37,258 nucleotides of DNA, taken from assembly GCA_000708835.1 (NCBI GenBank), contig DF237005.1, positions 1 to 37,258 on the forward strand, given 5' to 3'. The notes below the pieces were generated by a model. That model saw only the letters and a program-made list of their open reading frames with translations. It ran no database searches and was not told the origin of the DNA. The translations under genes were made by a program, and so were the position numbers. Positions 1 to 31,920 of this stretch are shown here, in pieces. Source of the stretch: Klebsormidium nitens (lineage: Eukaryota; Plantae; Klebsormidiophyceae). How positions within the stretch are numbered: position 1 is the stretch's first letter; every line of letters starts with the position of its first letter.

Positions 1-1527
1 CTAAGAAACGTTTCCGGCCAGATGATTTTCTTAGGTAGGTAGAACCGCTGGTACGGCAGCTGACTTTAATAGGTTCAAGTTATTACTCCAGTCCCCTTCG
101 CATTAATTGTGCATACAGTATCCTAGCTTCCGGTTCGATTCTTTCGCGGTAGCGTCACAGCTTGTAAACGTCATCGTGAAAGTGATTGCCTCTTCGGCAA
201 GCTAGGTCCAGTTTCTTTCAACCTTGTAGGAAACACGAAGCAAGGGCCATCGATATCCGAGCCCGAACCACAACGCCACTGGCCCTCATGCGGCACACAT
301 GCGGCATAGGAAACTACTTGTGCCCAAAAGTCAAGGTCAAAACCTCGGGCTTCCTTGCCGCCAAAGGCGCCTGGATTTCAAGAATACTCCAATATTCGAT
401 CCGTGTGCCGCGGATAATATAGGTAGGTAGATGTACGTGCTGGTGATCACCAGAATGCACCACGAAATGATATGTTTTAATCAAGTCTTAACAAGCGCGC
501 ACGTCGCGCTCGTTACACATATTGGTACTAGAACGAGTCCTGTTCAAGCGAAGTATGGTGGATTTGGCAGGAATATATGGGAGACCGTATCGGTCGAAAT
601 CAGCATATGGTTCAACATCTGACAACGAATCATTTACGAGAATGAAAGACGTCTTAGCCTTTACTTGGTGAATCTCATACCGGCAAACATATATCTCCAC
701 AAAGCAACACACGTTTTGTTTCTCTTCATGCGAACTTGAATATTCAATTGTCTGGTGCTTTCCGTGGAGAGGAGAAGCCCGTTTTCAATGATCAGTATAG
801 AGCGCCTATAGAGCGCCGCTAAATCTGCTTACATCAGACGTCCAAACTTGCCTGGCCATGCCAGTCACGATTCCCCGAGCTGAACTTTCCATTGGCTTTC
901 TTGGCCACATCATCGATCTCGATCGAATCGCTCGAGAATCTCCTCATTCTGAAAACTTTTCACTTGCTGGCCACTATCTGTCCACTAATGAAAAAAAAAG
1001 AACCTAACTGAAAACGCAAAACAGCCCGAAGGATTTCCTTATGGACAACTTAGGTACATCGAGGTCGTGCACGACTATGCAAGTCTAAATGATCTATACC
1101 CGAACGTGAGGTTGAGACAGCTGCAAAGGTGACTGCGCCATGCCGAAAATCAGCTTTCTACACTCCCACACTCTCGTGTAACTCCGTTCGATGTAAGCGA
1201 CTCTACACAGACGAAAAATCTCATGGAGCTATAGGACAGAAAGAGTCAACAACAGCGGAGAAAGCAATTGACTCGTGTCCGTGTCCCGTGTCCTGTGTTC
1301 AGATACGGTTCCGCAATGGGACCGCATCACACCCCTTCCACTTCTCTATCACACCGGCCATAGGGTCGTAGGTTGGTCTTTTTACCACATCTGTCTGCGA
1401 TCAGCTCCCTCCCGCGGTTTAAGGTCTGCCTGAAGTTCTCACACTCAAGGAAGCTTTCATTCACATGTCACTCAGTCCTAGTACTCCACTCTCTGACCCT
1501 GCGTCAAGTCGCGTCTTGGACAGCTTG

Positions 1528-2175
1528 TCAAGAAACGTTGCTGATTGGCGCGGACCCCACCTGCGCACCTTCATCTCGGCTCCGTTCCAATACTTCCGGA
1601 GGCTTCCGCAGCGGTTCTGGGTGATCCGACTCCGGCGCACTGGCTGGTTGATCTTTAGACGGACCGACCGGTGACAAGTGGTCGGGATCTGCCCCCGCCG
1701 GTGAGACGGCGCCTGGAGGCATAAACCGGGACACGTCACCGGGGCTCTCGCTAGCTGGTGCCTCCCTAGGGGGTATGACCCGGGACACGTCTTTGTCGGG
1801 ATCTGCCTCGGCTGGTGGATCTGTGGGGGACCGGAACCGGGACACGAGAGTGGGGTGTGTTTTAGCTGGTCCGTCTGCCGGGGAATGGAAGCGGAGAACG
1901 GAACCGAAATCGGAATGTTCTTTGGCTAATTGGTCCCCCTGGGGACGGAACTGGGGAACGGAACGGGAACCGGAATGTTCTTTGGCTGGTTCGTCCCCCG
2001 GGGGACGGAACCGGCCCGCCCAGCCCGTCGTGAGGCCCTGCATTTGGTCGCCGTTCGCCCCGGCCTGGGCTGCCCGGTTGACGAGGCACTTCCGGAAGGA
2101 GAAGTCTTCCGAGGAGCCGTCGGTCCTGAGGACGTGGAAGCACCGGTCGCTTTGGCCCTTCGGGGCGCGGTCGAC
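1528..2175 (-). CDS. NRPD1/NRPE1: Pol IV/V subunit last exon (E22): C-terminal half of DeCL/DUF3223 plus Pro-rich repeat tail
   Basis: Acceptor ttccag|GTCGAC; VDRAPKGQSDRCFHVLRTDGSSEDFSFRKCL matches the DeCL consensus (RCF.V...DG...DFS.RKC); stop TGA at 1528-1530. Confidence 0.88.
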   Translation of the reverse strand, partial: VDRAPKGQSDRCFHVLRTDGSSEDFSFRKCLVNRAAQAGANGDQMQGLTTGWAGRFRPPGDEPAKEHSGSRSVPQFRPQGDQLAKEHSDFGSVLRFHSPADGPAKTHPTLVSRFRSPTDPPAEADPDKDVSRVIPPREAPASESPGDVSRFMPPGAVSPAGADPDHLSPVGPSKDQPASAPESDHPEPLRKPPEVLERSRDEGAQVGSAPISNVS

Positions 2176-5100
2176 CTGGAAGAAGTCAGAGAGAAAGTGC
2201 GGTTTGTGTGACATTTCCGCGACGTTATGCGGTCCATAGGCAGATGTGCAGATATGATACCAGACCCAGTTTAAGTGTACGTTCTCAAACTGCGCTTGCC
2301 TGCAATTTGTTCGCGATATGCAACTGTCAGCCGGCCGTCGTTGCAGAAGAGAATCGGACTTTCAAGCCGTTCCGGCTACATCTTTCACAACTTTCAGAAC
2401 AACCTGGGTAAGAGCCACTTAACTTAGAAAGCTTCAAGTGGGTTGCCCGAGTCGAAATCACAAAGCAACTTGAATTTCAAAAGAGGGGGCCCGAATGCAT
2501 ACGACGCGAGCCTTCGATCGTGAGCCCTATGTAGCCAATTTCCGAACTTATCCTGGGCTCCCTACAATGCCAAATCGACTGATCAATTCCCACCTTGATT
2601 GCCTCGACCCCACACCCAATCTTCTCCGCGGCCTTCTCGTGATACGCCAAAAGCTCCTCAAGCACGAACTGCTGGTCCTCGGGAGACAGCCGCTCGGAGA
2701 TCTCGTACCTGGAGGAAACAACGTAGTAGGCGTGTGAGCCGGTTGTCCCAGGGGAAGCTTGCTGAGGATCAAGAATTGCAAGCGTCGGGGAATCTTGTTA
2801 TGGGATACGTTAAGAGTAATAGAGTCCGAAACAGACTCGTGAGCGTAAACGAGAGTGACGCATCGAAACGCGGAGGTTCCAAGGAACGGATTGAGAGTTG
2901 GTCGACGTCAAGGCAAGATAAGGGGAATTCATTCAGAAACAATCGACAGAGACTTGTAACTCGAGGAGCTCCTCGAGAGAAAGCGTCGATTGGAAAGCAA
3001 GTTTGGAAGTTCGATATAAAGGCCTCTCAATTCAGACCTCTTTCACGATGCTCGAGAGAATCTTAAAAGCCACAGGTCCGCAATTCAGCAGCACTTTGAC
3101 CTTGGGAAACAACTCGCTGATGATTGGACTGCACCCTGACAAGCGTCACAAGCTGGAAGCCACATATGCCGGAATATCTGGGAATTCACTCCAGATTCTG
3201 TGCAAATCTCAACCCTCAGCGAATCAATCAAGCTCTGCGCATGCACGACGCTGCCAGCCATCGACGGCTGTTATTTTGTAATAGCCAAAGCTGCCGAAAG
3301 CTTCTCGAGCGAAGCCGTCTGAAAACGAGATCACACTACGATTTCAACCACCTGTCAGTCTCTCCCCTAAGAGGCACAGCCTCCATTAGCGTTGAATACA
3401 GAGAGCTTTACTTACCGGCGCAGAATCGTGCTTGCCCAGTTCCGTTTCGCCCTCAAATCCGTCACGAGCGGATCATCCTCTGACCCATGCCCAGAGAGCC
3501 TCTCCCGTTTCCCCTCCCTTTCCCCCGGGCGAATCTGCCCCCCCTGCCCCGCCTCATCTCGGCTCGTTTCCTCGGGCCTCTGTCTCTTCTCAGATCTCTC
3601 TTCCGCCGTTCCGGTGAGCCCTTGACCGGAATCTCCTCGTTCTGCTTCAGCTCCTCGCACTCGCTTCCCGTGGTTGTCTCCAACCGAGGCCCCTTTTCGG
3701 GCGACCTCGTCCGTTCTCTCCCACCCGTTTGATTTCCCCTGGTCGCCCTTCCAGGCGCTTCTAATTTCGTCGCCGTCTTTCCCGGTGTCCCACCCGGTAG
3801 CTCCGCCCCCCGTTCCCCATGCCCCCAGGCTCGCCTCCTCTTCCGACGGACCAGTTACTGCCTGCCACGTGGCGTCCTCAGGCGCCGCCCAAACCATCTC
3901 CTCCACTTCTGTCGAAGTCTTCTCCTTCTCGATTATTCGTGACTCGTTTTTCGCTCTCTTCGATTCCCCTTCGTTTTTAAGCTCTGAATTCTGCCCTCCT
4001 TCCGCTGCTCGTTCTTCAGGACCTTCCGGAAAATGCCCCCCCTCTAGTTCTTCGGCACCCCACCCAGCCGGCGACCCCCAACCGCTGCCCGCTTCTTCCT
4101 TAGTACAAGCACCCCGGGCGGTTTCGTCTGGAGCACTCCCTCCGGGAGAAACGACCGGCTGTTGTTCCGCCGCTGCTGAGGCGTGTTCCGGCGGAACGTT
4201 TGGTGGACCAGTCTCGCTCCCTGGCCTTCTCTCGAGACAACTTTCCGGTGTATTCCAACCAGTCCCCGATCTGTTCGCCGGGCTTTTCACTTGATGAGGC
4301 TCGATGGATATGCCCCACCCGGTCGCTCCAACCGGGTTCCCCCACCCACTCTCGTTAGCTGGCCCTCGTTCAAGAGGAGTTTCCACCGACTTCCAGCCAG
4401 TCCCAGCATTGTTTACGGTTTGCGCGGGCTCGGTATTAAGGTTCCAACCGGTCCCTTCAACTGGATCTCCCCAACCAGAGCCAGGATCTTCCTTCCAATT
4501 GGACTTTCCGGCAGCTGCTGACACATCTTCCGGGCTTCTGTTCCGATCACTCTCTTTAGCTGGCCCTCTCTGAAGAGGAGCTTCTGATCCGTTCCAACCA
4601 GTGCCAGACTTGTTTCCCGCTTTCTTAGGCTCCCTGGGAATGTCCCACCCGGTCCCTTCAACCGGTTCGTCCCAGCCGGAGCCAGGGTCTTTGTTCCGGT
4701 CAGATTCCGCCGGAGCGCCCCAGCCGGTGGCAGTCTCCGGGCCGTCGCGGTTGGCCTGGGGCGATGCTGGAGCGCTGGTGTGGGTAGCAGACCAAGGCTG
4801 CTGGACATGGGATGATTGATAAGACGGCCAGAAAGCTCTTCGAGTTTGTTTGATGTCTCGGACCTAGCTTGTGAAAGGTCTAGGATTCAAACAATAGGAA
4901 GGAAGGAAAGCCATCAGTGGTGTGAATGCGATGTTAGCAGGAGCCGTGATGGGTGGGGAAAAAGTCCAGAACCTCGCGAAGGCTTCACCCGTTGTCAAGC
5001 GAGTCTCGAAGATGCTATCAAAAAAATTCAGAACACGGGGACGCTCGTTGACACTTGTCTAACGGCACATGTGACCGTAAAATGCGAGAGCCCTGTTTTG

Positions 5101-8100
5101 AACGATCAGAAGACTCATGTAGGCATGGAGTGCGGCGAAGGACGATCGATGCTGACGAATCAGGTCAACAGATCTTACATGCTCCGCAGCCCCAGTCTTC
5201 CTTCCGTCCCGCCACGGCATCGCCTTTCCCGGCGACCAGATTCCATCTCCGACCTGCTCTTGGTCGCCCATCTGCTGCTTCTCCTGGCCCGACGTGGCCG
5301 CGCGCTCCTGCGCCGCGCGCGCCTGCGCGATGCGCTCCTGCGGAACGGCCGCGCGCGCCGCGCGAGGGTTTGGGAGTAGCGCGAACCCGCCGCCCGTTCC
5401 CGACGCGACGGGCAGCCCCAGCCCCGCGCGCGCGCTCGGCTGCGTGAGCGCGTCTCTCTGGCCGGCATATGCCGCGTCCGTCAGGATTTTCGGCGCGCTC
5501 TTATTCTGCAACGAAAACGAACCGGAGGTTGGAGCGTTTGATCTCCGCGGCATCTGGAAGAGCTGGTTCCGAGTTTTGGATACGAGAAGAGTAGCCTGAA
5601 AGAATGCCAAACGCGCCAGAAATGACAAATTGGGTAGAATTTCGGTCAAAGCTTCCAGGCCAAATAAGAGAGCTTTCAATATCGAGTTCACGGACTTTTG
5701 CAGGAGGGCACTTGTTTCGCAGGGGCTCAGCCTTGAAGTAATTCGCCGCGGCTTTGAAACAGATTATGTGCGCTCAGATGCCAGTCAAACAATTCTATGG
5801 AAGGACCACGCCCGCACGGATTCTCTGCCAAGGCGGGCTGTAGCAGACCTCCTGTTCGCTATTGATCGTTCCACTCAGGGTTACGGATATTCAGTCTCTT
5901 CCAAAGCGTTTCTACATCCACTCATACCTCTTCTGACTTTTTTTCGAGTCAGTTTTACTGTCATTCTTGCGATGAGTCTTCGATCCTGGTTTCTGAAATC
6001 AATTGATTATAAATTCCGTCTGTGGCTTGACTACCCGTTACCTCTCACCCCCCAAAACATGAGAGATATGAAGAACCTCACCTCTTTCCGGTATATCGCT
6101 CTGGAGAGCGGCGGAATGGAAAGCTTCATCCGGGCGCGATGCTCTTTGTAGCCGTTCATATTCAGCGAGAGCACCTTCCCCGAGGCCGTCATCTTGTCGG
6201 CGACCAGCTCCAGGTGCTTGCGGTCCACCTTGTCGCCGTACACTTCTTGCAAATCCTGAAGAGTCATCAGGAACGCTTTTCGTGCTGTTGCAAAACCGGT
6301 CCCAGAAGGAGGAGTTGTATGTCTGGGCGACAGAAGGAGTCGTTCAATCGTGCCGAGTTTGGGTTTGATTGAGGATGCCGAGGCAGTCTCTATCATACTC
6401 CGTAGATTCTTGAAGATGTCTCTGACTAGAGCTGGCTTGGTTGGCAGCAAGATTCAAGTCCATCAGAAGTTGAGTGAAGTGTAGTGGTGTGTATCGCGAC
6501 AAGAGACGGAACAGAAGCTCGTCCAAGGCTCTCTGATCTGCCGTCCGATGCATCTAGTTGAGGCCCAATGCCTCTTCACCAAATCAAGACAAGCGCGCGC
6601 AGAAGAATCTCGAGAACCCTGACGAGATTGTGCACGCATCGAGTGTTGGCTTGTCTTCCTCAGAAACTGTGCACGTTCGTAGAAGCTAGAGTTTGGAAGA
6701 CCTCAAGGAGATGAGGCCCTCGCCATGAACGGAACTGCAAGGATCGAGGACGTCGATAAGCTACTGTTGTCGAATATCCCTCACCTCGACGAGGGCCGCT
6801 TGCGCCGCCTCGATGCCCAGGCTTTCCGCCACGTCCTCACAGTCTTCCGGTCTCGACCGGAACGGATCCATCAGCTCAGAAGCATCGATGTCAAGCCCCT
6901 CAGTTTGCAAGTCCTCTAACCGACCACTTCCGTCCTTTACTGACGCCTCCTCATCCGAGGCATCTTCTTCTTCGCTGTCCGAGTTAAAGAAGCTCTTGGG
7001 CCATACTCTTCTGCTTCCGCTCTCCGCTCCCTCTCTCTTTCCGGTCCTTCCCGTTCCGCCCACTTCCCCCCTTCCGCCGGAATCATCGCCAGCCTCGTGC
7101 CGGAACGGCGGAACCTTCGCCACCGCCAGGAAAGCGAGTCCGAGCGGCGACTGTTCTTGAGCATTCGGTACTTTCTGCAAATACTCGCGCTCGTAGTTCC
7201 TCAAACCCTGCTTAAGTTCTGCGGGGGACATTTCGCCATTCTTGTTCGCGCCGATCTTCGGTTTCGGCGGCCGCTCTACCGTGACGGTGAGGCCGCGCGC
7301 CCCGTGCGCGCGCGCAGGAGCCGCGGTCGCGGAGGCCACCCAAGAAGACCCTGGCAAAGCGAAACGGCCAGTTCGTTCGATGTAAAGGGCGTTCTTCATT
7401 GATTTGCATCAAAGATACACTATGGATGCACCGTTAGATCTGCGGGCGAAGAGGACTTCCATCATGTCTGGATTACGACCGCAATCTCTCTTACAGCTGA
7501 GACAGCAAAAGGGATCTGAAAGTATTTCGGCTACTCGGGTCTGTCGGCAGAGGTTCGAGACAAGGACTTCAACTTATATTGTGTGTTCCTATGTTTTGAA
7601 ACACAACGAAGGGCCAAGAGCAACCAGTACTGACATTTCGAATGCACATATGTTTGACTTGTCATCGGGCCAGGAAAGTTGCCAAGCTGCCTTTACTGCA
7701 CAATCCAGCGAACCAAACCTTTTCAATGCAATCTGGAGCGATTACTATGCGAGTCAGGCTCAATTCGACTTTGGGTCAAGTCTGTGAAATGGTTTGAACA
7801 AATTGATGTCTCTGAAAGATGCGACCCAAACTCCAAGTATGTCGTTTCAAGAAGAGCGAAAGAGAATGCGCGCCAACCTCCAATGTTCGTCTCCAGCACC
7901 TCGCGCACTTTGCTCTCAAACCTCTCCATGCGCTTGTCGAACGGCGCGTCCTTGCGCGTCCACCACCCGAGCAGCGCGCGCACCACCAGGCGCCGCGGGT
8001 CGTCGACGAGAGCCTGGTTCCGCCTCCTACAAGAGTTATCTTCTGCTAGTTTAATAGCTAATCGGTTATTTAAGCACTCTTCTCTCGTTTTCAAAATCGT

Positions 8101-11100
8101 CATCACAGGGACGTTTAACTGCTAACCAGGCTGATTGCAGGACTTGAGTCTTCGATTTTTCAGCACATAGCCGTTCTAAACCTCGTTGCAAGGCTGGATT
8201 TGACCACCAAAGTCTGGTTGTTAGACATGTATCCACTTTCTAACCATCCAATAACCAGTCGAAAGCTATCCATGGTCAAGGGCCACATACTCCAGTGAAT
8301 CACTGGAAACAAGAACACTCGGCTGTGGCGATGTCTCTCACAAGCAAGAGGCTGGAATTGCCATTCTCGGTTCAAATACCCGTCAAAACGGACTCAAGTA
8401 AGCATTGCAAGGTACTATCAGAACAAGAAGGACGAGCTCTGCGCCAAGCCGCAAAACCTGTCCGTCGATTCCTGCCCAAAGGGTGATGATCAGTTGGTCT
8501 TTCTGATATTCGTGGCGGAGCGCTGTTTGCTTTTTGTCTTCAAGTTTCGTAGATTCTCACCGTTTTGGAGGACTGGAGATGGAGTCTTCCACGGGTTGGG
8601 GTACTTGCGGAAAGTCGACAGAGAACTCCTCTGGAAGCATTTCTTCGGCTCTTTCCGCCAAAGTCTGGAGCTCATATGCGGCCGGCGCGTTGCCGTCGTC
8701 TTTCTGCCGCCGTTTGGCCGCCAGAGTTGACCGCAGGCATTCAGCGACGTGGCCCTGGGAAAGTACCGTGATGTTATGTGATAGAGCACCTTCGATGGCG
8801 AAAGAATTTTGTGAAACCTTTCCGGCAAACTTAAGGTTACCTGCTAAACAGCACCGAAACGACCGTTTTCGCTTGAAGTAGTCGCTGACAAGTTCGGCAG
8901 GGCAATGTATCAACTAGCAGTACGGTGGTATCGACCGTACGGTTGAAAAAGGTCAGCGCCCGGGGGACGGGTGGGGATACTTTAGGGATTTGAGCAAGTC
9001 CCTCAGGAATACTGCAAGCATCCTAGACTTTCTTCATCTCTTCTTCTTTTGGATTTGTCGGATGTCACGCAAGCCTTTCTACTGGAAGTAAATTCACCTG
9101 TGCTCAGATCGAGCGAGCTCCCGACCTTGCGAGGTCTAGGCGGCAATTTCCGTAATGTTTAAATGACCGTAACCCGGTTCTGAAGCCCCCCGCGCCCCGA
9201 TCGCAAAAAATGTCAGAATTGCTCTCTACGGGGCCAGTGGGTCAAGACAGGTCAAGATGGTGTACCTCAGAGAAAGAATTGAAGATCCAAGATGAGTATA
9301 ATCCCCAAGTGACAGAACATCGCGAACCCAAATACTTACCTGCTCCGCAACCCTACCCACCCCTAAAGCCCCAAACGAACCCTTACCGTTCGCTTACCTC
9401 ATTACGTCAACTTGACATCGAGTTTCTTGATTTTGGGTCAAGTGTAGGATAAGCCGAGACAAGAAAGGATTCGATGCGAACTAAGTTAGCAAGAAGGAAG
9501 AGGGGCTGCGCGGTCTTACCGAGTCGCGCAGCTCAAGGATTGCCAGGGCCGGAGCCGCGTTCATATCCAAGACCAGATTTGGGAGCCTAACGCCACGTGT
9601 CGATCCGTCGACCTCTAGCCACGTGTACGACGTCAGTGTCAAGGTGGGACGATCCTCCTTGAGCATGCGCCTGGGTGGAGTAGGCAAAGCATGAGGAGAA
9701 GAGTTTTGAAAACAGCCCAAAAGGTCGGAACTGGCAGACATCGCAGTTTTTCTCCACGCGTTTCAAAGAGAGCGAAGGAAACCGGTGTCAATTGCGTGAA
9801 GAAATCCCTACGGAGATGCGCAAAGTGTAATCTGCGTGCTGAATAGATGATTCAATACCTATCTCTGATGACAGAAGTATTAGTCCACTTAAGCAAACAA
9901 ACCACGATCTATTCCTAATCTTTCAACGCATCCCAGCCTGCTGGAATCAATCAAACCCAGCCCGCTGAATCGATCAAACGTACGGTCTACTCAGACGGCT
10001 CCAGTTGTCGATCGAGGGTACGACTGAGAGACGTTGATTGCTCCTCACACGACGCGCCACGAGGCGACCGCGGCCTCCAAAGAGCGCGGCCGCAGATGCC
10101 GCTCGAAGTGTGCGCACACGCGCGCGCGGAGGGGCGTGAGGAGGGCGCCACGCGCGTCGGGCGGCTGGAGCGCTAGGTTGACGGCTGTGGTCTTCCCTTT
10201 CAGAGGGTCTCGCTTCAAGGTAAGAATATCCTGCAAACAGAATCGGCAAGAAATTTCTCAAAAGTCCGGACACCGGCAAAATATCTTCCATCAAGGTACC
10301 TTTTTGACCAGGACACACCAAAAGTGTAATTTGAGTCATCTTGACTACTCAGCGAGTTCGCAATTCGCAACGTGCACACTCATGAGTCCGATGAGGCCAT
10401 TAAGCTCAAGTAAGGGAAAGTGAAAAGGTAATGATCGGATCAATCTCATCAATCAGTTTGAAGTTTAGAGACACTGCCTTTAAGAGTCGGCCAGATTGAT
10501 ACGCAGATTGCGGCTCCCTTCGTACCACCAGCAAATGTAGAGAAAATAACACCCTGTGCATGCGTGCAGTATTTGGTCGAAACCTGAACCATTCCAAGAC
10601 TGTTCTTGTGAGCGAAAGGAAGAAATCCAATCTCGTTTTCTATTCCTGCTCTCCCAAACGATCGAATTACATCCTAGCGATCATTGCAATATGAACCGCC
10701 AGTACATGAAACACGACGAAATGTGTTTTTACTCGCCTTAACTCGTCGCGCCACGTCTAGTACCCCGCCACCCGGCCGCTTCACCGCGTCCAAAACCCCC
10801 TGCGCCAGCGGCTCCGCGAGCGCGTGCGCGGCCGCGGCTCCGACGGCATCGCCCGCTTCCGGAAAGCCCCACGTCCCTGGAATTCCGTCGTCCCAGGTTC
10901 CTTCCGCCGGAACGTCCGGAATACCGCCAAACGTCGGGTTCTCGTCATCGCACGGGTCCGACTGCATAGGCTCCGTCTCGCATTCCGCTTCCGGTCCAAG
11001 CGGTGACGTCTCTTCCGCTGTAGGGTCACCGAAACTCTTCTCCGTGGGTTCCCCGTCCCCTTTCCCGCCGGAATCCGCGCGCGCCTTTGCGAACTCCCCC

Positions 11101-14100
11101 TCCGTCGTCTGCGCGCCGTCAAAAGGCTGGGTCACTTCGTTGAAGGCCCCCCCGGCATTGCTGACCTCGTCCATTGCCTTCAGTACGTCATCCACTGCAT
11201 CAAGGACGTCAGTCAGCTCATCGCTGACTCCATCCCGGGGGGCGCTTCGAAACTCGTCGCCCTCCGCTCTCTCGGTTCCGCCGCCCCTCATGTTGGACAA
11301 CGCGGAGCCGGAAACCTCTTCGCCGCTCGCTTCGCTCTCTCCATCACTTCCGCTGTTCGGCATCCATTCAGGATCCTCTTCTGAGCTCGAGTTGTCAGAG
11401 GTTTTCCTAAAATTCTTTCGCTTGCGAACCTTGGAAGCGTCCTTTTGCGGCGGACTCGAGTTATCGCCAGAGCCCACACCGCCAGCGACGGAACGCTTTC
11501 GCCTGCGGGTGACTTTCAGGCGGCGCGGCCGCGGCCGCGTTCCGAACGCCCGCACCGGACCTTCCTGCCCTTCGCCTCCTGTTTCCATCTTGGTCACATC
11601 CGACGGGTTTACAGCGTCCACGTCATTCTGCACCATGTTCGTGACGCAAGCGAGCGCTGCCCCAATTGATTGCGATCCGTCGCTCAACTTTTCCGTTTCG
11701 ATCCCCAGGGCGCCGTCAGAGCGGGCGGAAACAGACCCCGGAACGGCCCCCTGTTCGGTCTTTCCACTAGACACTTCTGGCAAATCCTGCTTTCGCTCGT
11801 CTTCGGCGGAGGCAGAGGGAGCTCCACTTCGCAGCGTCTCCGAACCCTGAGCTGCTTCAACCCTCTCCGGGTTAGAAGACTTCTCCTTTTCGCCCCTATC
11901 GCTACTCGCTTTCAAACCAGTCCATCCAGAAGTGGTATTCTTCCATCCGTCTTCGTTCCCATCCCAACCTCTGTCACCTTCTTGGCTCCCCCTCTCACCA
12001 CCGCTCCGGTGCTTATCAGTCTCCTCCCCTCCCTTTTGCGTCTCCATCCCGTCTTCGTCTTCCCCCCACCTCTCGCCAGGAGCATTCTCTTCCTGACCCT
12101 TTCCTTCTTCTGACCCTGAATCCTCGTCGTACCACCATTCCGTTCCAGGGGTAGGAAACTTCTTCCGCTCCAGGCCCAGAAACGGAACCTTCGAGGGCGA
12201 ATCCAGCAGCACTCCCACCCCGCGCGCTCCACGCGCGCGCGCACGTTCCGTCCGCTTGATCGGCTCCGGCTCGGTGCGCGCGCCCACTCTTTTGGAGTAC
12301 TTCGCCCGGGCTCCGTCCCATTCTGTAGAGGGAAACCGAACCACGTGGCCGTCTGCCGACGTCACCATGCCTAGTTCGTCGAAGGTCAAATCGCCCAGAT
12401 GGAACATAAGGTTCTTGCCCTGGAAGGAGAAAAGAGCGATGTCAGATTAGAGCAGAGCCTTAATTACTTTTTCCCCATCTTCCGGGTGCTTGCATGGGGT
12501 TGGCAGAACGAGGAGTCCTGACACTGGAGAAAAGTGGGGAGAATATGGCTCATCAATGATCAAAGAAGGGGCTTTCTCATTGATGAGCCAGATTTTTTTT
12601 CCACCTTGAAGAGAGGAGCGTATTCGAAGCTGACGTGCCCTTCTATTCTAAGCCTGCAACCGTCCCTCTTCAGAACCAGCAACCCTTGGTAGCTTTTGCA
12701 GAGGCAATGCCAGCTTTTCTAAAGATGCAACTTTCTAAAAAGTTTCCGAGCCAATTTTTTTTTTTAACTTTTTGCTTGGCTTGCTTCTCTCCTATGCTGC
12801 ACCCGATGTTCCCTGACGCGACAGGAGCAGAAGATGAATCATCAAGAATGACGCTACAAACTTCCGACGTTTTATTAAGTGGACTGATGAATCTTCTATA
12901 TCAGATCAATTTCGAAATAGAAACACAAATGCAACCAGCTAAGCGAAGCATACCAAGAGAGGATTTAGAGTTCCTCACAATACTGTACGGTAGGTCATTC
13001 CCGGTCCCCTTCAGCACGAGCGAGTGCCGCTCCGCCATCGCCTGGGCGAAGAAGTGGTCCGCGCGCGTGCGCGCGCCGGACACCAGCGGCGTCCGGATGA
13101 ACTTGTGGGCCTCAAAGTACGCGGCCGCGAAGCGCGCCTCTTCCCGATACTGGCGCGCGAAGGCGCCCGGCAGTGCGCGCGCGCTGACCAGCCGCGAGCG
13201 GCCGCGGCTCAGTTCGTCGAAGCGAGAAGCCCACCTGAGGGAAAAGAGAATGTTTTGAATCGCCGAGGTGTTTGCGAAAGGAAAGAAAAGTGTCGGCCTG
13301 TCTTCTTTCTTACACTAAAATGGAGCGTCTCTAAGAAATCAGAAAATCCAACGGGTAATATAGAAGCGCCCCCGGACAATCGACTTTGGAAAACGTGAAG
13401 CTTTCTTGACGCGAAAATCGATCGGAGCTTTTCTGCTTCTTCTATGGCGTGAATCAACAAGAAGAATGAATACAAGATCCTGCCAAGTATCAGATTCCAA
13501 ATGAACTTGGTCAAAATCTGTGCCCAAGAGCTCCGGGCTCCACCGAACCGGAACCCAATCCAGATTGCAAGTTCGACATACCCGTGTCGAATTCTCATTT
13601 CGGCCAGAGCCACCGCTCGGCCACCGCTCGGCGCTAGCAAAAATGCGAATAGAAGATTTTAGGCATTGCTCAGATTGAGTCTAAACCTGATGAAGCGATG
13701 CTTTGAACCATCCCTCTCGTAAATATTCCTCGCCCAATCCTTGTTGGCCTTAATGGTAGCTTTTCAAAGTTTCTGATTTCAAAACGACGCGGATCCTTCA
13801 AGACACCTCACCAGCTTTCGGACGGCAGGTGCGGCAGGAAGCGCTCGGTTTCGAGCATCGGCAGCAGCGCGCGCCCCTCCCACAGCTGGAGGCCCTGTGC
13901 GAGCGCCATCTTCTGCAGATTGGCGGGGGATCCCTTCGACCCTGCTTCGTACAGGGCCCGGAAGGCGTTCCCCGGGGGCACGTGTCGGTTCATAAGCGCC
14001 TGCTCCTCCTTTGCGGCGCGCTGCAGGTATCGACTTGTTACGGAGAATTTTGTTTATCTTCTATATTTGTGCCAAATCCGAAGGGCTCGATTGCATCTCG

Positions 14101-17100
14101 TCAGTACCTCGACCTAATCCAACAGAATTCTCAGGTGCAGCAGTGTTTTCGAGACAGGCATCGCGACAGTGTTGAATGAGAGATGCTGTTGAGATTCAGC
14201 TTGTGTTTGATGAACGATCCGCGAGGCTGAATTGACGTCTTGTAGCAGAAGTTAGGGGGCAAAATACTCCAACATGTATGTATGTGTAAAAATTGCGACC
14301 AATACTTGTTGGAATTTTCACTAACTTATCAATTCTAGGATGCGGAACTTACAAGGAGTTCAGAAGAGAAGCATGTACACAACTGTTGTGTCAGGACTGC
14401 CAGAGATTGCCACTTTTCATCCTTGTCCTGAGGACCAGCGTTCTATCTTCAGAAAGAAACTTCGTCCTTGAATGATGAACATTTCTGACAGAGCGACCAC
14501 ACAATGTTTCTCCTCACCTCGAATACGCGGATCACATCGCTCTGCGCTTCTTCGTCCCTCCGAAGACGGCCCCACCAGTTGGCCCTCCTCTTCACAGGCG
14601 GCCCGTGACATTCTTCTTCCCTGCCGACTTCCTCGCTTGCCGTCCGCTCCGGCGCCTTCCGCTTCCGCCCGCTCCCTTCCGGCGGAACCCCAACCCGGCT
14701 CTCCTCGGCCGACAGCGCACCAGTTGAATTCCATTCCTTTCTTAACCCGTTCTTAACCCACCTCCCTTGACCAATCAGCTTTTTCACCTGTCTCAGATCT
14801 TCCAGCGCGAAGCGCATCCCCGCCCTCTTTCTTCCGGTCACCGCGGCCGCGGCCGCCTTCTCGTCGAGCGCGCGCGCGGGTTGGCGCTTCGGCGCCCGGT
14901 TTTCTCCCCCGGGGATCCGTTCTCCATCCAGTTCCGTTAGCCCCGAACCTTCCTTCGAGGACCCCGTTCCGCCCCAGCCGGTTCCGGTTCCGTCCCATCC
15001 TGTTCCGCCCCAACCGGGCGGGTCCGACCGACCGGTCTGTCTTACTGGCTGGTTATCCTGGTTATCTGCGTCCCCACTCAACCCCCCTAGTGACACACCC
15101 TCTCCCAGGCTGACGTCAGCATCGCCTCCTCTCACGGCATTCAGTACCACTGTGACGTCACCAACGCCGTCTTTGACTTCATCCTGCTCCATCACGGCGT
15201 CAAAATCGGGATCGCTCCACGCCTCTCTCTGCAGCGGATCGTCCTCGGGGGATCCTCCTCCCCGGAGGCGCGCGGGCGCGTCGCTCACGCTCGCGGCCCC
15301 GCTCGCGTCAGGCGGCGCGGCCCCGTCCGAGCTTTCGCTGTCAAGCACCGTCCGCTTCCGCTTCCGCCGCGGAACGGACTCCCTCCTCGCGCCCGGCTTG
15401 CGCGCTTCCCTCGCCTCTAGTTCCTGACGCAAGCGTTCGCCAAGATCGCCCGTGTCCGCATGCATGACCGATTCCGGTTCCGGTTCCGCCGCGCTCATCT
15501 TCACGACGCAGCGGATCGCTATGCGCAACGCCCGCATGCGAATCTGCTCAAATTTGTTTTGTGCCCGGTTGGAAGAACCGGGGGCGCGGCTCGGCGTGAT
15601 CAGCAGGTCCTCGAGGCCTAGGCTGAAGCCCCGGTTGTCCAGGAAGACTCGGGTAAAATGCGTAGCCGCGTCAAGGAAGCGCACCGCGGCCGCGGCGCCG
15701 TACCTGGGGCAAAAGATTGCAATCATCCGGTCATCAAAATGGGTGTCGGAATCAAGGCTCGGGAAATGCACATTCATTGAGTCTGAGTGTTGTTTGTACG
15801 GACCAGAGTCGAAAGTTTGGTTAATTGAAGTTTCCAGCACCGTAGACTGCCTGGATTGGACACGCGTGTCGTACATCCAGTGATAAGCATGAGATGACAA
15901 GATGCTCAGAGGGTTGACGGCAGAAAGTTTCAGAAGGAAAGCGGAAGCTACGATTGCTTGTCAAAGGGCAAGACAGGAAGGAACGTATCCAGTCAGGCAA
16001 AGCGGTGAAAGTCGTAAACTTCTGACTCGAAGCATAGTACTCGCGGCGGTCTGTTTCTATCTGATTCGTTCTGCTGAAGAACTTTTTCTTTGCTCCCGGA
16101 TCCAAAATGCCCTGAAAGTGCTTTAATTTTGAATTGCCTCGAGCTGCGTGGACAAAAAGAGTAAGCACGCTTTAACTTCAGAAGCCTTATATAAACAGTA
16201 CGAACTAAACTCCCATGAACACATTACGAAACGCCGGTAGGAGAAAGCTTCCTAATACCTACTCTCTAGAGTGGGTTTCCCATCTTGATTGAATCTAACA
16301 GGCTCTGTGCTCAAAAGCGCAATCCCAAGCCCAGGCAAACCAACTTCAGAAACACCTTTTTGGTAGATACTTTCTGTGCAATCTTCAAAAAGGGTTCTTG
16401 TCAGGGCGACCATCAAGTCGCTCACATTCTCCACAGGGTCGCCACGAGGCCGTCCGGCGCCTCCCCTAGCCACGTGGCGCCCATCCGTGCGCCGTAGAAT
16501 TCCGCCCGTCCCCTCGCGATCCGGACGCCGTCTTCTTCGCTAGCGTACGTAAAGCCGTCCGGAAGCGCGGCGCATAGGATCTGGTCCGCGGTGTAAACAG
16601 GCTCCCCGTCGAGCTTTCGTCTAGCGGGGGGATCCGGAAGCAGCGTTTGCTCCCCCCCATCCGCTTCAGTTCCGGTTGGGGGGTCAAATTGCAGCCGTTT
16701 TTTCGACCCCCCACTGCGAGAAGCTTCGTCCGGTATGCCCACAACAAGCTGGCAGGCGTCCGCACGGGTGAAGTCAACCGGGGCCCCCTTTCTGCCTGAC
16801 GTCAGCATGAGGAACACGCCCAACCTGGAGTCCTGCCACAGGGCAACGAGCGCCTGGCCCTTTTGCGTAGACGTGACGTTGGCTGACGTCAGCAGGAGCT
16901 CCTGCGCCTCGGCGCACGCTTCCGGCCCTTGCGGCACGTGAAGGTTCATCTGCGAGTGAGCGTCGAACAACGCTGTTAGATGCTTTCTTTGGAGCAAATG
17001 AAAGCAAAAGAAGTGGGTGAGCATTGGGATGACTTGCAGTGAACTCGCTCGACCACGTTCACACGAGAGCACCGGTTTTAAACTCCGCTTCCGATAGACC

Positions 17101-20100
17101 CTGACCCCCGGTTCTCGCTCCGTGCACCCGCTTTGAATGAGCGACTCTGTTCAAACCCCTCCACGGTACCTTACTACGGAGCTTGTTATGTATGCTCGTT
17201 TTAACCGCGCATTTGCGCAAGCTGCCGGTTTGGAGACATGAGGAGACAGAAAGCCAAATGACTAAGTTAGTCAAGTCTCAACACACATAGCGACAACTAA
17301 CTTGGACTTCGGATGGAGAAAGACTCTCACCTCCTCTATCAATCTAGAACCAGCAGCTTGCTCGGAAGGCTCAGCTAATGCACTTTTTATTTTGTTTTGA
17401 TGCGGGTCACTTGTAATTCATCTATGTTTCTGGCGCCCCAGTCAGCTTTGAAGACCACCGTCGTTTCATGTGCTGAGTCTGACCTATGAAACTACGAGAA
17501 GATTCAGGACGCTCACAGGTTGGAGATGCCCTCAGAGTCTGACTTTCTCAGACCGAAACTTTCTCACACTTTCTCACAGGCCTTTTTGGAGGCGAAGTCA
17601 GTGGCGCTCACCTCATCTCCGTCAAAGTCGCCGTTGCACGCGTGGCAGAGCGGCAGCGGCAACCCAATGGTTTTGCAGTCGGTTAGCTTGACCCGGCTTG
17701 CTAACAGATTGTGCTGCCGGACCGACGGGTTGCGGTTCCACAAGACCAGGTCCCCTTCCGTCAGCAACCTTTCAATGACGTCACCCACTCGCAGCTCGAA
17801 CTGCCCCGGGCTGACGAGGGCGACTTTCCGCCACGTTCCGTTCCGCCGGAACTGGACGATCTGCCCGTCGAACGGACGGACCGGCCTGTTGGGCGCCCGT
17901 GCTTTCTCCCGCTTCTCTTCTTCTTGCACTCTTTCTTCTCCACGTGATCCTTTCTTGGCGACACCTTCCCCTTGCATTCCTCTCTGCGAGTCGCCCCAAA
18001 CCCCAGGCGCCTCGAACTTTGCCCTCGTCTTTCCCCATCCATCTTCACCGCTTCTCTCATTCCTTTCAGCAACCAACTTCTCTTCTTCCACACCCCAACC
18101 GGTTGCCTCTTCTCCTTCACCGGGCGCTTCTTCCTGCCAATTGCTTACGTCATCCGGGTTACTGACGTCATCTCGAGCCACTGCCGCGCCCCAAGCGCCC
18201 GGTTCACCCCAACCGGTCGCCCCTCCCTTATCTTCACCCATACTCTTTCCCGCACTTCCTTGGTTGGTCTCATTTTGTGCGCAGTCAATGTCTTTTTGCT
18301 CCTCTATGTGTTCTTCAATCGGTTCACGGGCTCCTGGACGCTCCGCTTCAGTTGGATTCGCTCCACCTTCCGGGTCGTTGAAGTCCGTTTCCTGCCAGCC
18401 CGTTCCGCTCCGTTCCGTTTTCCAGGCCGTTCCTTCCGCTGCAGCTTCCGAATAACCCCTTCTTCCCCTCCCACTTTCAACCTCCATCCTGTCCACTGGT
18501 TTTTGGGGACTTTCCGTTGTGTCTCCGTCAGCAGAATCAGCCTCCTTCATGCAGTCAACATTACCCCATCCAGACCCTCCGCCCCACACTGGCTGGCTTT
18601 CGAGATCGGCGTTCCGTTTAGTTTCCGTTCCGCTCTTCCGCTGCTCGTCCATCCCTGCCTCGACAGAACGCTGCTTCCCCGCATCGCCCACGCCGCCCCA
18701 CCCTGTTCCGCCGCCCCATCCCAGCTGGCTTCCGGTGTCCTGATTCCGTTCCGTTCCCTGTCCTCCGTTCCGCTGCTCCTCTATGACTACGTCACCTGAA
18801 CGCTGCTTCTCCGCACCGCCCACATCACCCCAACGAGTTCCCCCGTCCCCTTCCGGCTGGGTTCCGGTGTCATCATTCCGTTGGTTTCCCGTTCCGTTCC
18901 GCTGCTTTTCTAGTCTTACTTCATCGGAACTCTGCTTCTCCGCACCGCCCACTTCGCCACAACCATTCCCTCCGCCCCACCCTTCCACCTCCGGCTGTGT
19001 TCCATCAATCTCTTTCCGCTGCATCTCCGTCCTTCCGTTCCGCTGGCCTGCCGCTTTCTCCTCCCCAGCTCCCCAGCCCCTATCGCTCTGCCGACGAGTC
19101 CTTTGGTTCTGATCGCCTTCCGATTCTCTACCGGTCTCAAATGCCTCTCCCGCCCTAGTTGCAGTCCCATCATTTGACGGGCCCTCGGTTGCATCTTCCG
19201 GGCACTCTTTCAACGGCTCGTCTCTCTCCAGGAGTCCTCGGGCGGCTCGAATTGATCGCTCGAAAATTCCCTGCAGCCTCGGCAGGTTCAACGACGTCAC
19301 CCTCTCCGTTTTTCTGAGGCCCATCTCCCGGGGGACTTCGACCGCGGTCACGCTGACGTCAGCGGCGGGCGAGATAACGCTGCGGCCGCTGTAGTCGCTC
19401 CGTTTGCCCTTGAGGAGCGCCACGTGGCCCTCTTTCGGCTCTTTGGGCGGCTGGATCAGGTCGAGGATGCCCCGGTCTTTCTTGGTGGGCGCTCGGGCCT
19501 GCATTAGAATCCGAGCTTCAGTTTCTTTCTGCTCCGAGGAGGACTGGTGTACTGATTCTGAAGGTGTTTCAGAGAACCCGGTTTGGAAGGCGCAGGTATG
19601 TATCTCTGAAGCTTTGACCCCTTGACCACGATTGGTCTAAGGGAATCAGAAATAAATCACGTTTCGTTTGTAGAAAAAGTTCTTAATGCACGTCTCTTCG
19701 GGTGTCCGCCAATGCAAGTAGCGACTGCCCGGCGTCTGACGGAACCTGCCGGACCGTCGGTCACACGGTCGGGAAAGACAGATGATGAACAAGAGCCAGA
19801 AGGTGGATCGCCGAGTATCAGAAAAAGTTTTGACGAGCGGACTTGGCTCGCAAAAGAAAAGTACAATCGGAATCCACTGAGGGGCTTGTGAATGTGAGCG
19901 GATCTGTCACGAGCACCATGTTCCCTTCTCTAGTGGTTCTTCCACAAGGGCTTAGCTTGCTTCGAACAACATCCTGAACAAACGATCCATCATGTTTGCC
20001 GCTATTCCGGCGCGCTGCTCTGTCTGAAGGTGCGTGCCAACTCTTCGTTAAATTCCATCAGCTGCGGACACAAGTACAGCTCTGTTCAAACCCCGACAAG

Positions 20101-23100
20101 TCGAAAACTGCAGAGTAACTCGGCACGTTCCCAAACTCCCACGAAATCAAGCCAGTGTCGAAAGACGTGTTCCCCGCACCTTCCGCTGTTCCGCTGTTCC
20201 GCTCTCCGGCTCCTTGGCGGCCGCGCGGAAGAAGGAGTTGACGGGCGGCTGCAGGCGCTCGAGCTCGAACACGTCAGGCACTTTGCCGGCGTCCTTCAGT
20301 TGTTTCAGCTTCTTGTTGGCCGCCAAGATTGACCGCAGACATCGGGTGATGTGGTCCTGAATCACGACAGGTCGTAGTCTCAGATTTTCCATCGTGTAAC
20401 GCTTAAGTATCCACAGGGCTGCTTCTAGGGCTCTCGAGAGGTTGAATGACCGAGATTATAGAGTGATCAATCTTCCTTTTGCGAGAGAAAACATTCAGGA
20501 GTGGGATTGAATGAATGACCGTGAACCTTCTGCTTTTCTGAAACGAGGAAATGTGCGACTCTGGACGTATGCTCGACATCCCCAGATTGATTCCATTTTT
20601 GTGCTCTAGTAGTACTGGCGGGAGCCACATTGGATGCTTCTTCCGTTATGACTTGAGCTTTTGCACAAATCTAGGGATGATAAGGGACTTGAAGTTCCGA
20701 AGCAGAATACTGTAATTCATTGCGTAGAAGACTTCCAGATTCTTCAGGGTCTGACAGTTTTGCTTCTCCTTGAATTCTTGACTGGAAGCAGAACACTATG
20801 AAGACCCTCTTTTAAAGGCTTGTACGAGTTGAACCACTTGATCAATCTGCTCTCACGTTTGTCAAGAATTTCAGGAACCGCAGCTTACCACTTTCAAGCG
20901 GGAGGCCCACTCCGGAGCGATCCGGAGGTGCGGGGGCGGAACGAGGAGAACGGAATGAACTAGCCACTCCGGTCGGCCAAGACCTCCCCGCGGCTTGAAA
21001 CCCCTCCACTCCTCGTCAGTGATCTTTTTGAAAAGCCTCTGGACCTGCAACGGTAATAAAAGATCACGTGGGCTTTTGTATTCACGCATCAAAATCGGTG
21101 CTGTTCTGGTTGACATCAGCGTTCTACGGGAAGATAGACTCCTCATGGGCTGTTTTGAGCCTGTTCATAGGCCGTCACAGATCGCGAACCCGACTCATGT
21201 ATAGCGTTGAGAAATTGACTCAGAATTTTGACTAGAATGATGGTTTTTGGCGCCTCAGAGTGTCCCCGTCTCCAACGCAGGGATACGCATAGAAGACCAG
21301 GCTGCCCAAACAGCACATTCTTTGGTCCGAACTTGCGCTTCGTCGAAGGTCTGTCAGATGCCTTTCAATGGAGCAATATAGCATGAATATGATGCAGGGC
21401 CTCCAAGAAAGTCTCTTTGAAGAAAGCCTCTGAGCCTCGTGGCTTTGCCGCGACCCATCGTTTGACAGGTTGCAACTGCATGTCGCCAGATTCTGTATAC
21501 ACGTTGCTTCCGAGCGACTGCACAGGTGGAGTTACAAGCAACTGGTCGCCGCGGCACACTTTCAAACGCGCCTAGGACGTAGGGGACTGGTTCAGATTCG
21601 GCGACCGAGAGCAGGCCGTGGTCCGCTTTCTTGGACGCCATCTCCGTCCTACGTGGCCAGATTCGCGGCGACTGCGACTGCGTTACCGCCGTCTCACGGT
21701 CGCCGGCACGGGGCTTACCGCTTTTGCGTCGAAGTCTTCTCGGAACTCGACGTCGGCTCTCTTCTTGCACACCGCGCAGAGCATCCGCCGGAACTGCAGA
21801 ACCTTCGCCTCAGCGGACTCTTTCACGGAATCCTCGCAGCAAACCTCGCCCCCATCGCTCTCATCTCCTTCGCTTGATTCCGCCGGAACGCGTTCCGCGG
21901 CTCTCCGGCCGGCTTTCGGACGGAGCTGCAGCCGGTGGCCGTTGAAGTTGAGCAGCGGGGGCGGCTGCATCGCATGAAAAGGAATAGATCATAACTCTTT
22001 GTTTTCGTTAACACTGCACACTTATTGTTGATCGATTATCTTTCTCACACATGTTAGATTGCTTGAATGCTCAAGAAGATTGGTCATGCATTTTAGCAAT
22101 AGCGTTCAATCGACGAAGCGAGGGGCTAAGATTGCCAAACCATATCTAGATCTCAAAGCTCTCACGGCTAGCATTGGAAGACTTTTGCAGGATGGGCTCC
22201 TTTTAGAAATGCACCCGAGCTTTTTATCAAGCACAGAAACTAAAATTATTTACCTCAGTAGTTCCTAATGATTCTGATACTCGCCTATTCATGTCAAAAG
22301 TGGCTTCCTAAGAAGCGATTCCCTTTCCTTCTAGTCGACGTTCTGAAAAGGGGCCTTTAAAAACAAACCTTCTGAAGACATACTCTAATGGTTGCGCTGC
22401 AACCATTAGAATTCTCTACTTGCTCCAGAAGAAAGACTCCCTTGTCGAAGAGCCCCACTTTAGACCAGCACGTTTGAGTTGTGGCCCAATTAAAGGTTGG
22501 CAGTCAATGGGGAACCGCAGAACGCACTCCTTCACTAACTCTCTGCCCAGAACGCGTAGCTACTCAGTACTTGAAAGTGACTTCAAGATCAGAAGGTATA
22601 CAACTGTTGCTTAGGTATGCCTTAAAGCCGTCTCGATTTTGCGTCAGCCATTGTACGAGATTCGACTCTCACCACCTTTCTGCTGAGGCGTCGTCGGCAA
22701 TTGACGCAGAAAGAGAGCAGCACTTGGGTGACTTTTGGGATGAGATGTGGGAAGAACACTGGGAAGACGAGCTCGATATGGCCCCAGTGTCCTGCGAAAA
22801 GTAACAAACGGGCGACTTCAGCTGAAGGTCACGGAAGCATGCCGCACGTCGCTCGACCCTGTTAGACACAGGGTCGCAGCGACGTCAGCAAACAGCACGT
22901 GGGCTCCAGGGTGTTCGGCCCGGTTGACAGCAGTTTTTCGTCTCGATTGAGGCACGTGACTACATGAGTGGAGGCGCTCCGCCTTTGGCCTTCAACAAGG
23001 CATGAGCGGAAGATACTCTGCTAGAATTCGAAAACCCTGCTTCAGATGCAACGTGATTGTGATTGTGATACGAAGCTTGTGCTTTTGTGCAGCTTTTCTT

Positions 23101-29348: not shown

Positions 29349-31920
29349 TCAAGTGGAAAGTGCATTAACCGGTCTTGGTGCCCGAGTTTTTTTCCAACGG
29401 TCAACGTCTTCTTCTTCGACGAACGCACAAATCTCTGCCACGATGTAGCTCCTACTCGTCTCCTTATTCTTCCACTTGTCCAACAGACCGTCAAACCCAG
29501 GCTCGGTACGTGCACTGCAGAAACCGGAGTCCACCGCTTTGAGAGCCTCCACAAGCACAAGGCTCTCTTTCTTATGAAACTCCCGTTTCCAGATCCCCAT
29601 CTCAGCTTTCGCAGGGAACGACAACTTGTGCGAACATCCTGACCACGAGTCCCACTTTGCCAGGACTTGTTTCAAGAGTACTTTCAACATCTCTTGAACG
29701 TGCTTAGGTAGATACTGCCGGGGATTCGGAAGAGTTGGAGGGTTCCGGTTGGTGCATTCGTCGATTGTCGCTCGGATGATTGCGGCCTTTCGGGCCCGGT
29801 ACCGGTAAGCCAAGTAAGCCCACGTGGCTGCCGTAACCAGAGCCAAAAACGCAGGCGAGGCGATCCCGAGTCCAACCTTGATGGCAAGGTCGTTGCTTCC
29901 TGCAACGACACGGTAGCAGTGGGTATTTCCGGAAACGGGATCGCCGCAGCAGAAATTTCAACCGAGGAGTTGTGACTATCTGGTCTTCTTGAGGAAGGAA
30001 GCCTCCCGTCTTATGCATATCTAAACAGATCAGAACGGTGCAAGCTTAAGGAGATAAGGACGGGAGGAATTTAAAGGAAACACAGGAGGCCACCTTAAGC
30101 TGATGAATGCATGAGGAGATAGCAGTCCGTCAAAGGACGGACCATTGTCCTGATCCTGTGACTGCGAGCCTTGAACCCATTGTTGATATTTGACAGTGAT
30201 CGCAGGGTCGGAATACAAAAGCAGGACTTCGTTGGCAGGCTTCTTGAATAACTTACGGGGAAACAACGTTTCCGCAGTTCCAATGATCCGAGTCAAGGTG
30301 GATTCGGGCTCAAAACCTGGCAATTTAAGACAAACTGAAGTAACTCAAGGCGGCTTAACGCACGACGCGGCGAGCTTGGGAGCTTGGAGCCGACGCTACC
30401 ATACCAGTCAAGCTGCAGCCTCCCAGCTCAAGCCCCATCGGCACTACCAGCCCACTTGATATTGTTAATTCCTCAACCAAAACTTAGAGGTGCAGCATTG
30501 TGCTGCAAAGTAAACATCTCACCCGTGCTAGGAGGTGACGAGTTTGGGCCGGAGGGAGTGGTAAGAGGTGTTTGGGTCGGGGTAGTGACGCTCGCAGAAT
30601 TGAATGTGTTGCCTGGGCCGCTGAGCGGAGCAACACTTTTGGGGGTCGGCGAGGGAGAGGCAGTCAGGGTGGGGGCTGTCGGAGCAGGGACACTCGGCGG
30701 AGGAGTGGGCTCAGCGGTTGGTGGGGGTGTTGGGGCCGCAGTCGTCGGGAGGGGTGTTGGGGCAGGGGTGATTGTTGGGGCCGCAGTCGTGGGGCGGGGT
30801 GTTGGGGCAGCCGTTGTGAGTGGCGGCGTTGAGGGGGGAGTTGTAGGAGGGGGCTGCGTCGGGGTAGGAGGAAGTGTCGCTTGTGGGGTGAGAGCGGGGG
30901 CGGGGGTGTTTGGCTGGGGAGTACCGGTTCGTGAGCCCCCCCCAGCCAACGAGCAGCATCCTGCTAACGTAGAAATCCCGTCGCAGGTGACAACTGCGTC
31001 AGTATAGCCTGTGCATGTGCAGAAGGATCCGGAAGTGCTGCTGGTGCACACGTCGGCGCAGCAGGCAACGAATGTCTGGCTAGCTCCAGTCGGTGCTCGG
31101 CTGCAATCGTCGGCAGATATGGCGTGCAGCAAGCTTCCCCCGCTGGCCACAAGGTTACACGAACCCGAGGTTCCCCCTGCACCAATGACGAACGCTCCAT
31201 TTGCAACCCGAACACCCAGAAGATCACCTTTGTTGATACCTTTTTCCTCTAATTCTTGTTTAATTTCAATCTTCTTCCATCACAGAATTGTTTGAAATCT
31301 CTTGTGGAAACATATGTCCATGAACAACAATCCCTTCCTTCTCTGCTGTAGTGTGAGACATTTATCATGCTTCTGCCGTTAAAAGGCATCCAGCAATCTG
31401 GCTGTGCAAGACAGAAGACTGATCTTAAAGCTGAATCAGGATGTGTAAGAATGTCAATCCATTTTCAACAGAGGAAGTTGTGCCAGAAGGATTCTACTTT
31501 CACCTGATGCAAGGCCACCTTAGCGAGTAGCAAGATCAGGATTCACGCATAGACTGAGAAGATCATGCAGACAGACTTACACAGGCACTGAGAGACTCAC
31601 ATGGTTTATGGCAGCGGAATGGCAGCACATCGTGAAAGTGAGAAAGGTCACAGAACTTATCAGAACTGTCTGCACCTACCAGATATTTGAAGCAGATTCC
31701 GACGTGACAGCCTCTCGTGCGCTTGCGGCAACAAGCGCTGCCTGTCCACCAGATCAGGAGCAAGATCAGATGTCCTATATAGCAATGCAGCGCCCCCAGC
31801 CCTACTGGTTTGGCTGCCTGTGTGAACGTGCAAGCTGGCTTCGTACACCCTAGCATCAACGAAATTCAGCAGCATTGTCAAAAGCATGCTCCAACACAGT
31901 ATACGAGCTGCAATGACCAT
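29349..31920 (-). CDS. Type I membrane cell-surface glycoprotein, 3 exons (31680-31920, 30523-31176, 29349-29899), 481 aa
   Basis: Two phase-1 GT-AG introns join in frame (1,446 nt). Signal peptide MVIAARILCWSMLLTMLLNFVDA, RRNLLQ propeptide-like motif, 10-Cys domain, Pro/Thr stalk (TTAAPTP repeats), TM VGLGIASPAFLALVTAATWAYLAY followed by RYRARK, ~150 aa cytoplasmic tail. Confidence 0.78.
30729..30820 (-). repeat. TTAAPTP mucin/AGP-like coding repeats
   Basis: LTTAAPTPRPTTAAPTITPAPTPLPTTAAPTP; DNA unit tgttggggccgcagtcgt recurs. Confidence 0.8.

Follow-up and report, generated by a model that had tools for sequence, protein, structure and literature searches.

We analysed a window of 37,258 nucleotides from Klebsormidium nitens (the whole stretch of contig DF237005.1 considered here), and within it the region 2083-4800, which an original prediction from the letters alone had read as a C-terminal domain (CTD) of the type found in NRPE1, the largest subunit of RNA polymerase V (Pol V). 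The window, which has about 54% G+C and is intron-rich, carries on its minus strand a chain of long exon-sized open frames whose translations run from about 23545 down to 1531. Along these frames, Pfam identifies Rpb1 domains 1, 2, 2, 3, 4, and 5 in this order and then DUF3223, the profile of the DeCL domain, in the last two pieces. The metal A site, NGDFDGDE, is encoded in exon 17567-19636 (minus strand) and aligns with NADFDGDE of archaeal and eukaryotic largest subunits, and no Pol II heptad repeats were matched in the six frames of the whole window. The presence of Rpb1 domains 1 to 5 and the DFDGD site, together with the absence of heptads, therefore identifies 2083-4800 as the C-terminal portion of a very large gene for an RNA polymerase largest subunit. 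Its N-terminal zinc site reads CVNC where the aligned Pol II subunit has CMNC, and the NRPD1-specific C[KR]YC motif was not found there. We consider it likely that the stretch holds the 3' portion of a single expressed gene, which encodes the largest subunit of a noncanonical polymerase of the Pol IV/V type and belongs to a Klebsormidium-type streptophyte alga. After the last catalytic domain, this protein would continue with a disordered platform, about 460 residues long and bearing [ST]GW[GDN] motifs, then with DeCL and a tail of short repeats.

The platform exon encodes 21 tryptophans in 461 residues, 15 of which are adjacent to glycine (14 GW, 7 WG, and 6 GWG), compared with 6.0 +/- 2.0 in 20,000 residue shuffles, whose maximum was also 15. 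These motifs lie in an [ST]GW[GDN] context among small and acidic residues, as in known AGO hooks. Nine of the 15 G-adjacent tryptophans fall in three repeats of 46 to 48 amino acids with three GW motifs each, which bears out the prediction of three repeats of about 47 residues, and the other six lie elsewhere in the exon, again as predicted. The repeats are 46-60% identical at the protein level, with alignment z scores of 10.6-15.7 against shuffles. At the DNA level they are only 59-71% identical, and Tandem Repeats Finder reports no array in the GW exon.

The DeCL domain follows in the same protein as the Rpb1-type core and is split over three exons, as had been predicted. Its conserved start, the N-terminal helix, is encoded in the last ~20 codons of the GW exon, and the next two exon pieces tile the DUF3223 profile at positions 6-51 (E 1.4e-11, 45 bits) and 41-75, both above the gathering score of 21. 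In the PDB, DeCL exon 2 matches best to the DeCL parts of NRPE1 (8hil, 8him, and 8hyj; E about 0.1) and next to those of NRPD1. Every search, alignment, fold, and tree in this work used single exons. In the exon model, all tail introns are GT..AG and all exon phases fit, including a codon split between the final 2 nucleotides of the GW exon and the first nucleotide of DeCL exon 2. Of the limits originally given, 2083-4800, the lower one marks where DeCL ends and not where the frame does, which continues for 182 residues to a stop codon at 1530..1528. The tail added in this way consists of degenerate repeats of the type [SV]xRF[RMH]xP, in which Tandem Repeats Finder reports a 60-bp unit present 2.2 times at 1878-2011.

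Transcript data join the platform exon to the second exon of DeCL. RNA-type contigs came from four runs of one 2024 study, each sharing 10-22% of the words of the stretch, a proportion that fits exons only. Aligned to 1450-7400, they give joints at 6784/6254, 6082/5505, and 3413/2705, all three having GT..AG on the minus strand. The last of these comes from a spliced contig of run X6 that aligns to 3517..3413 and 2705..2592 and skips 707 nucleotides, with the cut ambiguous by 3 nucleotides, so in RNA the GW exon is joined directly to exon 2 of DeCL. The alignment of the same contig reaches 2592, 2 letters beyond where the exon is predicted to end, and 4 more letters follow on the contig; it would fit a continuation into the last exon, because the intron and that exon both begin with GT. 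Elsewhere, contigs cover 5267-5505 of the linker exon, 4095-4797 of the GW exon, and 1450-1831 of the tail and 3' end.

Relatives of the gene were found by a word-indexed protein search with its largest core exon (690 amino acids), which gave only 11 matches, none of them a named plant polymerase, and led to exon-sized products on one Logan contig (L001) and two metagenome contigs. Walking along both metagenome contigs then yielded the C-terminal regions L004 to L007. Both contigs are collinear with the window, with the core 35-60% identical, and the linker exon is conserved in L004 and L005. Two algal relatives keep the GW exon, the DeCL exons, and the splice positions of the window gene: their GW exons carry 11 and 13 hooks and end in ...ASAILRR, DeCL exon 2 is 67.5% identical between the window and L004-L007, and DeCL exon 3 in L006 and L007 has the same acceptor and sequence as in the window. 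With L006 and L007, the post-DeCL tail has no more than about its first 25 residues in common, and the frame of L006 ends early. The number of repeats also varies among relatives, L005 having one extra unit. The two metagenome contigs (L002/L004/L006 and L003/L005/L007) are different, each longer than 100 kb (JGI metagenomes 3300060284 and 3300060285) and each with a full GW and DeCL homologue; they may belong to two related algae or be a pair of haplotypes or of paralogues.

When the GW exons of the window and both relatives are aligned, identity to the window amounts to 37% overall, and tryptophan is the best-conserved residue of the platform, with 14 of the 21 positions invariant, compared with 24% of other residues (Fisher p 6e-5). 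That tryptophan is retained selectively while the low-complexity background drifts is what would be expected of a platform of short linear motifs. Hooks are also found within the core. An insertion of about 470 amino acids between both halves of Rpb1 domain 2 (exon 17567-19636, minus strand) carries 13 GW/WG hooks; 12 of its 17 tryptophans are kept in the relative P0001, and P0002 and P0003 retain a GWGGGTGWG block. The other large core exons, 14452-15960 and 10677-12446 (minus strand), carry 4 and 5 hooks. These giant GW-bearing insertions are shared only with uncharacterised algal-type contigs. The 590-amino-acid frame in which domain F should end and domain G should lie gave no PDB match at E <= 1, which fits a loss of conservation and is not a positional test. 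Elsewhere in the window, at 30476-31279 (minus strand), a proline/threonine-rich open frame of 268 amino acids has the look of an algal cell-wall glycoprotein. The features of the polymerase gene are collected in Table 1.

Table 1. Features of the largest-subunit gene in the window, in the order of transcription
Feature	Coordinates	Strand	Evidence or remark
Whole multi-exon Pol IV/V-type largest-subunit gene (likely assignment)	1528..23545, 5' limit approximate	-	Pfam domains, collinear relatives L001-L007
Last recognisable core exon, C-terminal part of Rpb1 domain 5	6082..6254	-	Pfam RNA_pol_Rpb1_5, E 4.9e-7
Linker exon, 109 aa, core to GW platform	5179..5505	-	Acceptor from RNA joint 6082/5505; donor CAT/GTAAGA predicted, phase 0
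GW/WG platform exon, 1385 nt, 461 codons + 2 nt	3416..4800	-	Acceptor tccag/CAG at 4800, donor CG/GTAAGT at 3416
Repeat 1, 47 aa, three GW	4549..4689	-	28/47 identities with repeat 2 (z 15.7)
Repeat 2, 46 aa, three GW	4351..4488	-	Protein alignment
Repeat 3, 48 aa, three GW	4210..4353	-	z 11.7 vs repeat 1, 10.6 vs repeat 2
Intron, GW exon to DeCL exon 2, 707 nt, GT..AG	2709..3415	-	Spliced contig
DeCL exon 2, 1 nt + 38 codons	2594..2708	-	Pfam DUF3223, profile 6-51
Last exon, 215 aa	1531..2175, stop 1530..1528	-	Acceptor ttccag/GTC at 2175, phase 0 start
DeCL end, first 33 codons of last exon	2077..2175	-	DUF3223, profile 41-75, E 8e-11, 43 bits
Post-DeCL tail, 182 aa, and stop codon	1528..2076	-	Open frame; about six degenerate repeats of ~19 aa

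Plain and profile structure searches of the core exons allowed no assignment of polymerase class, the best matches being archaeal, Pol III, and Pol II subunits and that to Arabidopsis NRPD1 only weak; this comparison with solved structures used single exons and a four-sequence profile. We therefore turn to the phylogeny of one exon region. An exhaustive profile search with it returned 214 proteins at E <= 1e-3, among them five full-length ones with DeCL. Among these five, each judged by its own best solved-structure match, P0067 is of the NRPE1 type (E 1e-186) and P0018 of the NRPD1 type (E 1e-134). In a maximum-likelihood tree of this region (46 rows and 147 columns), the DeCL-bearing proteins and their associated fragments form a clade of 13 rows at 100/99, which includes both P0067 and P0018, and the window with its relatives forms a separate clade at 100/98 outside it. 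In the best tree, the two clades group together on one side of a branch, with weak support (79/59.8). This position, weak on its own, would fit a lineage that branched before the split of NRPD1 and NRPE1. The window gene has the layout of NRPE1, as the original prediction had read it, with an Rpb1-type core, an AGO-hook platform, DeCL, a simple-repeat tail, and no C[KR]YC, yet it is not an NRPE1 orthologue in the strict sense, because it lies outside the clade that holds both NRPE1-type and NRPD1-type proteins. The further suggestion that a Pol V-like CTD predates the NRPD1/NRPE1 split gains support from the same placement, and it is a conclusion already published.

Two earlier surveys had come to a different result: neither NRPD1 nor NRPE1 turned up when the K. 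flaccidum genome was searched (Huang et al. 2015, PMC4476159), and Wang et al. (2021, PMC7994812) likewise reported none for streptophyte algae. According to the main text of Chakraborty, Trujillo, Kendall, and Mosher (2024, Genome Biol Evol 16:evae119, PMC11194755), several charophyte lineages possess a precursor of the Pol IV/V largest subunit, which in K. nitens, Chara braunii, and Closterium has many AGO hooks in the stretch from the catalytic region to DeCL and is without C[KR]YC; the gene is called single-copy there, and the authors conclude that the Pol V-like CTD is older than the NRPD1/NRPE1 split. Cermak et al. (2024, PMC10991848) trace the AGO hook of NRPE1 to the same origin. The charophyte NRPD/E1 of evae119, as described in that text, shares with the window gene a Pol II-derived subunit, the DFDGD site, GW/WG hooks before DeCL, and the lack of C[KR]YC; the difference is that it was built on partial predictions, with no K. 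nitens gene identifiers in the main text. Given the K. nitens source, the window gene is almost certainly the one drawn in Fig. 3a of that paper. Thus, the Pol V-like reading of this gene is correct but has been in print since 2024, and what our analysis adds to the published main text is the exact exon structure, the RNA-supported junction of GW exon and DeCL, the positional conservation of tryptophans, and the repeat tail after DeCL.

By analogy with Arabidopsis NRPE1, the hooks of the platform would tether Argonaute loaded with small interfering RNA to the transcribing polymerase, and a role of this gene in RNA-directed DNA methylation through such docking may be proposed on the same grounds. 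AGO4 binding is established for the NRPE1 platform, as reviewed in the text of PMC11194755. The DeCL domain of Arabidopsis NRPE1 is needed for enzyme function in vivo (10.1101/111831), and that of the algal polymerase would be required likewise.

Several observations weigh against the assignment of this gene to a Pol V-like, Argonaute-recruiting polymerase. The catalytic exons are very divergent: by plain similarity, archaeal, Pol III, and Pol II subunits outscore Arabidopsis NRPD1, and NRPE1 does not occur among the solved-structure matches listed for the core exons. The grouping of the window clade with the DeCL-bearing clade has weak support (79/59.8). Argonaute binding by the platform, being argued from analogy, stays putative. 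Among the contigs aligned to 1450-7400, none of RNA type spans 5179/4800 or 2594/2175, and a low-depth RNA-type contig of run X5 at 2221-2487 lies wholly within the predicted last intron; this contig may represent a retained intron, pre-mRNA, or DNA carry-over.

The gap at 2594/2175 and the contig sitting in that intron are also what could be cited if the DeCL exons formed a separate downstream gene and the fusion were only apparent, the more so as plants possess stand-alone DeCL genes. We give this explanation, which the original prediction had named as one that would undo it, very little weight. For exon 2 it is contradicted by the RNA joint 3413/2705, since the spliced contig runs from the GW exon into DeCL exon 2; moreover, the GW exon ends with the codons for the conserved N-terminal helix of DeCL, the split codon needs both exons, and L004-L007 keep the arrangement. 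Even less credible is a source in land-plant DNA with an ordinary NRPE1, the other possibility that the original prediction had named as its undoing. The domain order does match NRPE1, but proteins of land-plant type reach E 1e-186 and 1e-134 against solved NRPE1 and NRPD1, whereas the core exons of the window barely match. In the tree, too, the window clade is not part of the 100/99 clade in which both types lie, and the giant GW-bearing core insertions are common only to uncharacterised algal-type contigs.

The remaining alternatives concern the meaning of the platform. It is unlikely, though less so than the others, that the GW platform of the alga arose independently of that of land-plant NRPE1, so that only the fusion of polymerase and DeCL would be ancestral and the likeness to Pol V convergent. 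Between orthologues, the WG/GW platforms of NRPE1 have no sequence identity in common, and repeat expansion drives their turnover (Huang et al. 2015, PMC4476159); repeat number differs already between close relatives here, as the extra unit of L005 shows, and several DeCL-bearing relatives are hook-poor (P0017 with 3, P0048 with 2, and P0075 with 1). However, tryptophan positions are stably conserved within the Klebsormidium-type relatives, and the main text of PMC11194755 describes hooks that lie between core and DeCL both in all land-plant NRPE1 and in several separate lineages of charophytes; a single origin with loss in NRPD1 is therefore simpler. We regard as improbable the idea that the W-rich region is a generic disordered linker whose GW motifs bind a non-Argonaute partner or nothing specific. 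GW-rich insertions inside the catalytic core would suit such a linker, but selective conservation of tryptophan while the flanks drift would not, nor would the [ST]GW[GDN] context among small, acidic residues, which is of the known AGO-hook type, or the position of the platform between core and DeCL, which is that of the AGO4-binding NRPE1 described in PMC11194755. A Pol IV/V-type largest subunit with an AGO-hook platform remains our preferred reading of the gene. Whether the alga has two such genes, the hook-bearing giant one and a less divergent copy without the tail, is a separate matter, and we hold this to be doubtful. If there were two functional copies, a division into hook-bearing and hook-less polymerases could have arisen in Klebsormidiophyceae, independently of or before land plants.

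The gene bears on the timing of the dedicated silencing polymerase of plants. From a hook-bearing, DeCL-tailed subunit in a streptophyte alga that branched early, it follows that a Pol V-like enzyme recruiting Argonaute would have existed before land plants and before the separation of Pol IV from Pol V. The conserved tryptophan positions among related algae contrast with the rapid turnover reported for land-plant NRPE1. Our additions to this picture are modest and leave it unchanged: an exact exon model, evidence that the hook exon and DeCL lie on one mRNA, conserved tryptophans, and a tail after DeCL. These details will be of use for designing cDNA clones and binding assays.

Among known systems, the algal gene may be compared with Arabidopsis NRPE1, whose CTD has the same order of core, disordered WG/GW platform, DeCL, and simple-repeat tail (QS-rich in Arabidopsis), and both have tandem repeats whose number is unequal among relatives. 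However, their platforms and tails are unalignable, and the algal core is far more divergent, with large GW-bearing insertions. Arabidopsis NRPD1 likewise has an Rpb1-type core with a C-terminal DeCL and, as in the algal gene, no heptads, but it has no AGO-hook platform and carries C[KR]YC, whereas the algal gene has the platform and CVNC. In contrast to a stand-alone DeCL/DCL protein, the algal DeCL is joined to the GW exon in RNA, with a codon split across the intron. Disordered GW/WG repeat regions in which tryptophan is the conserved element are also known from SPT5L/KTF1, SPT6L, GW182/TNRC6, and fission-yeast Tas3; these are accessory factors, whereas the algal hooks lie inside the largest subunit of the polymerase itself.

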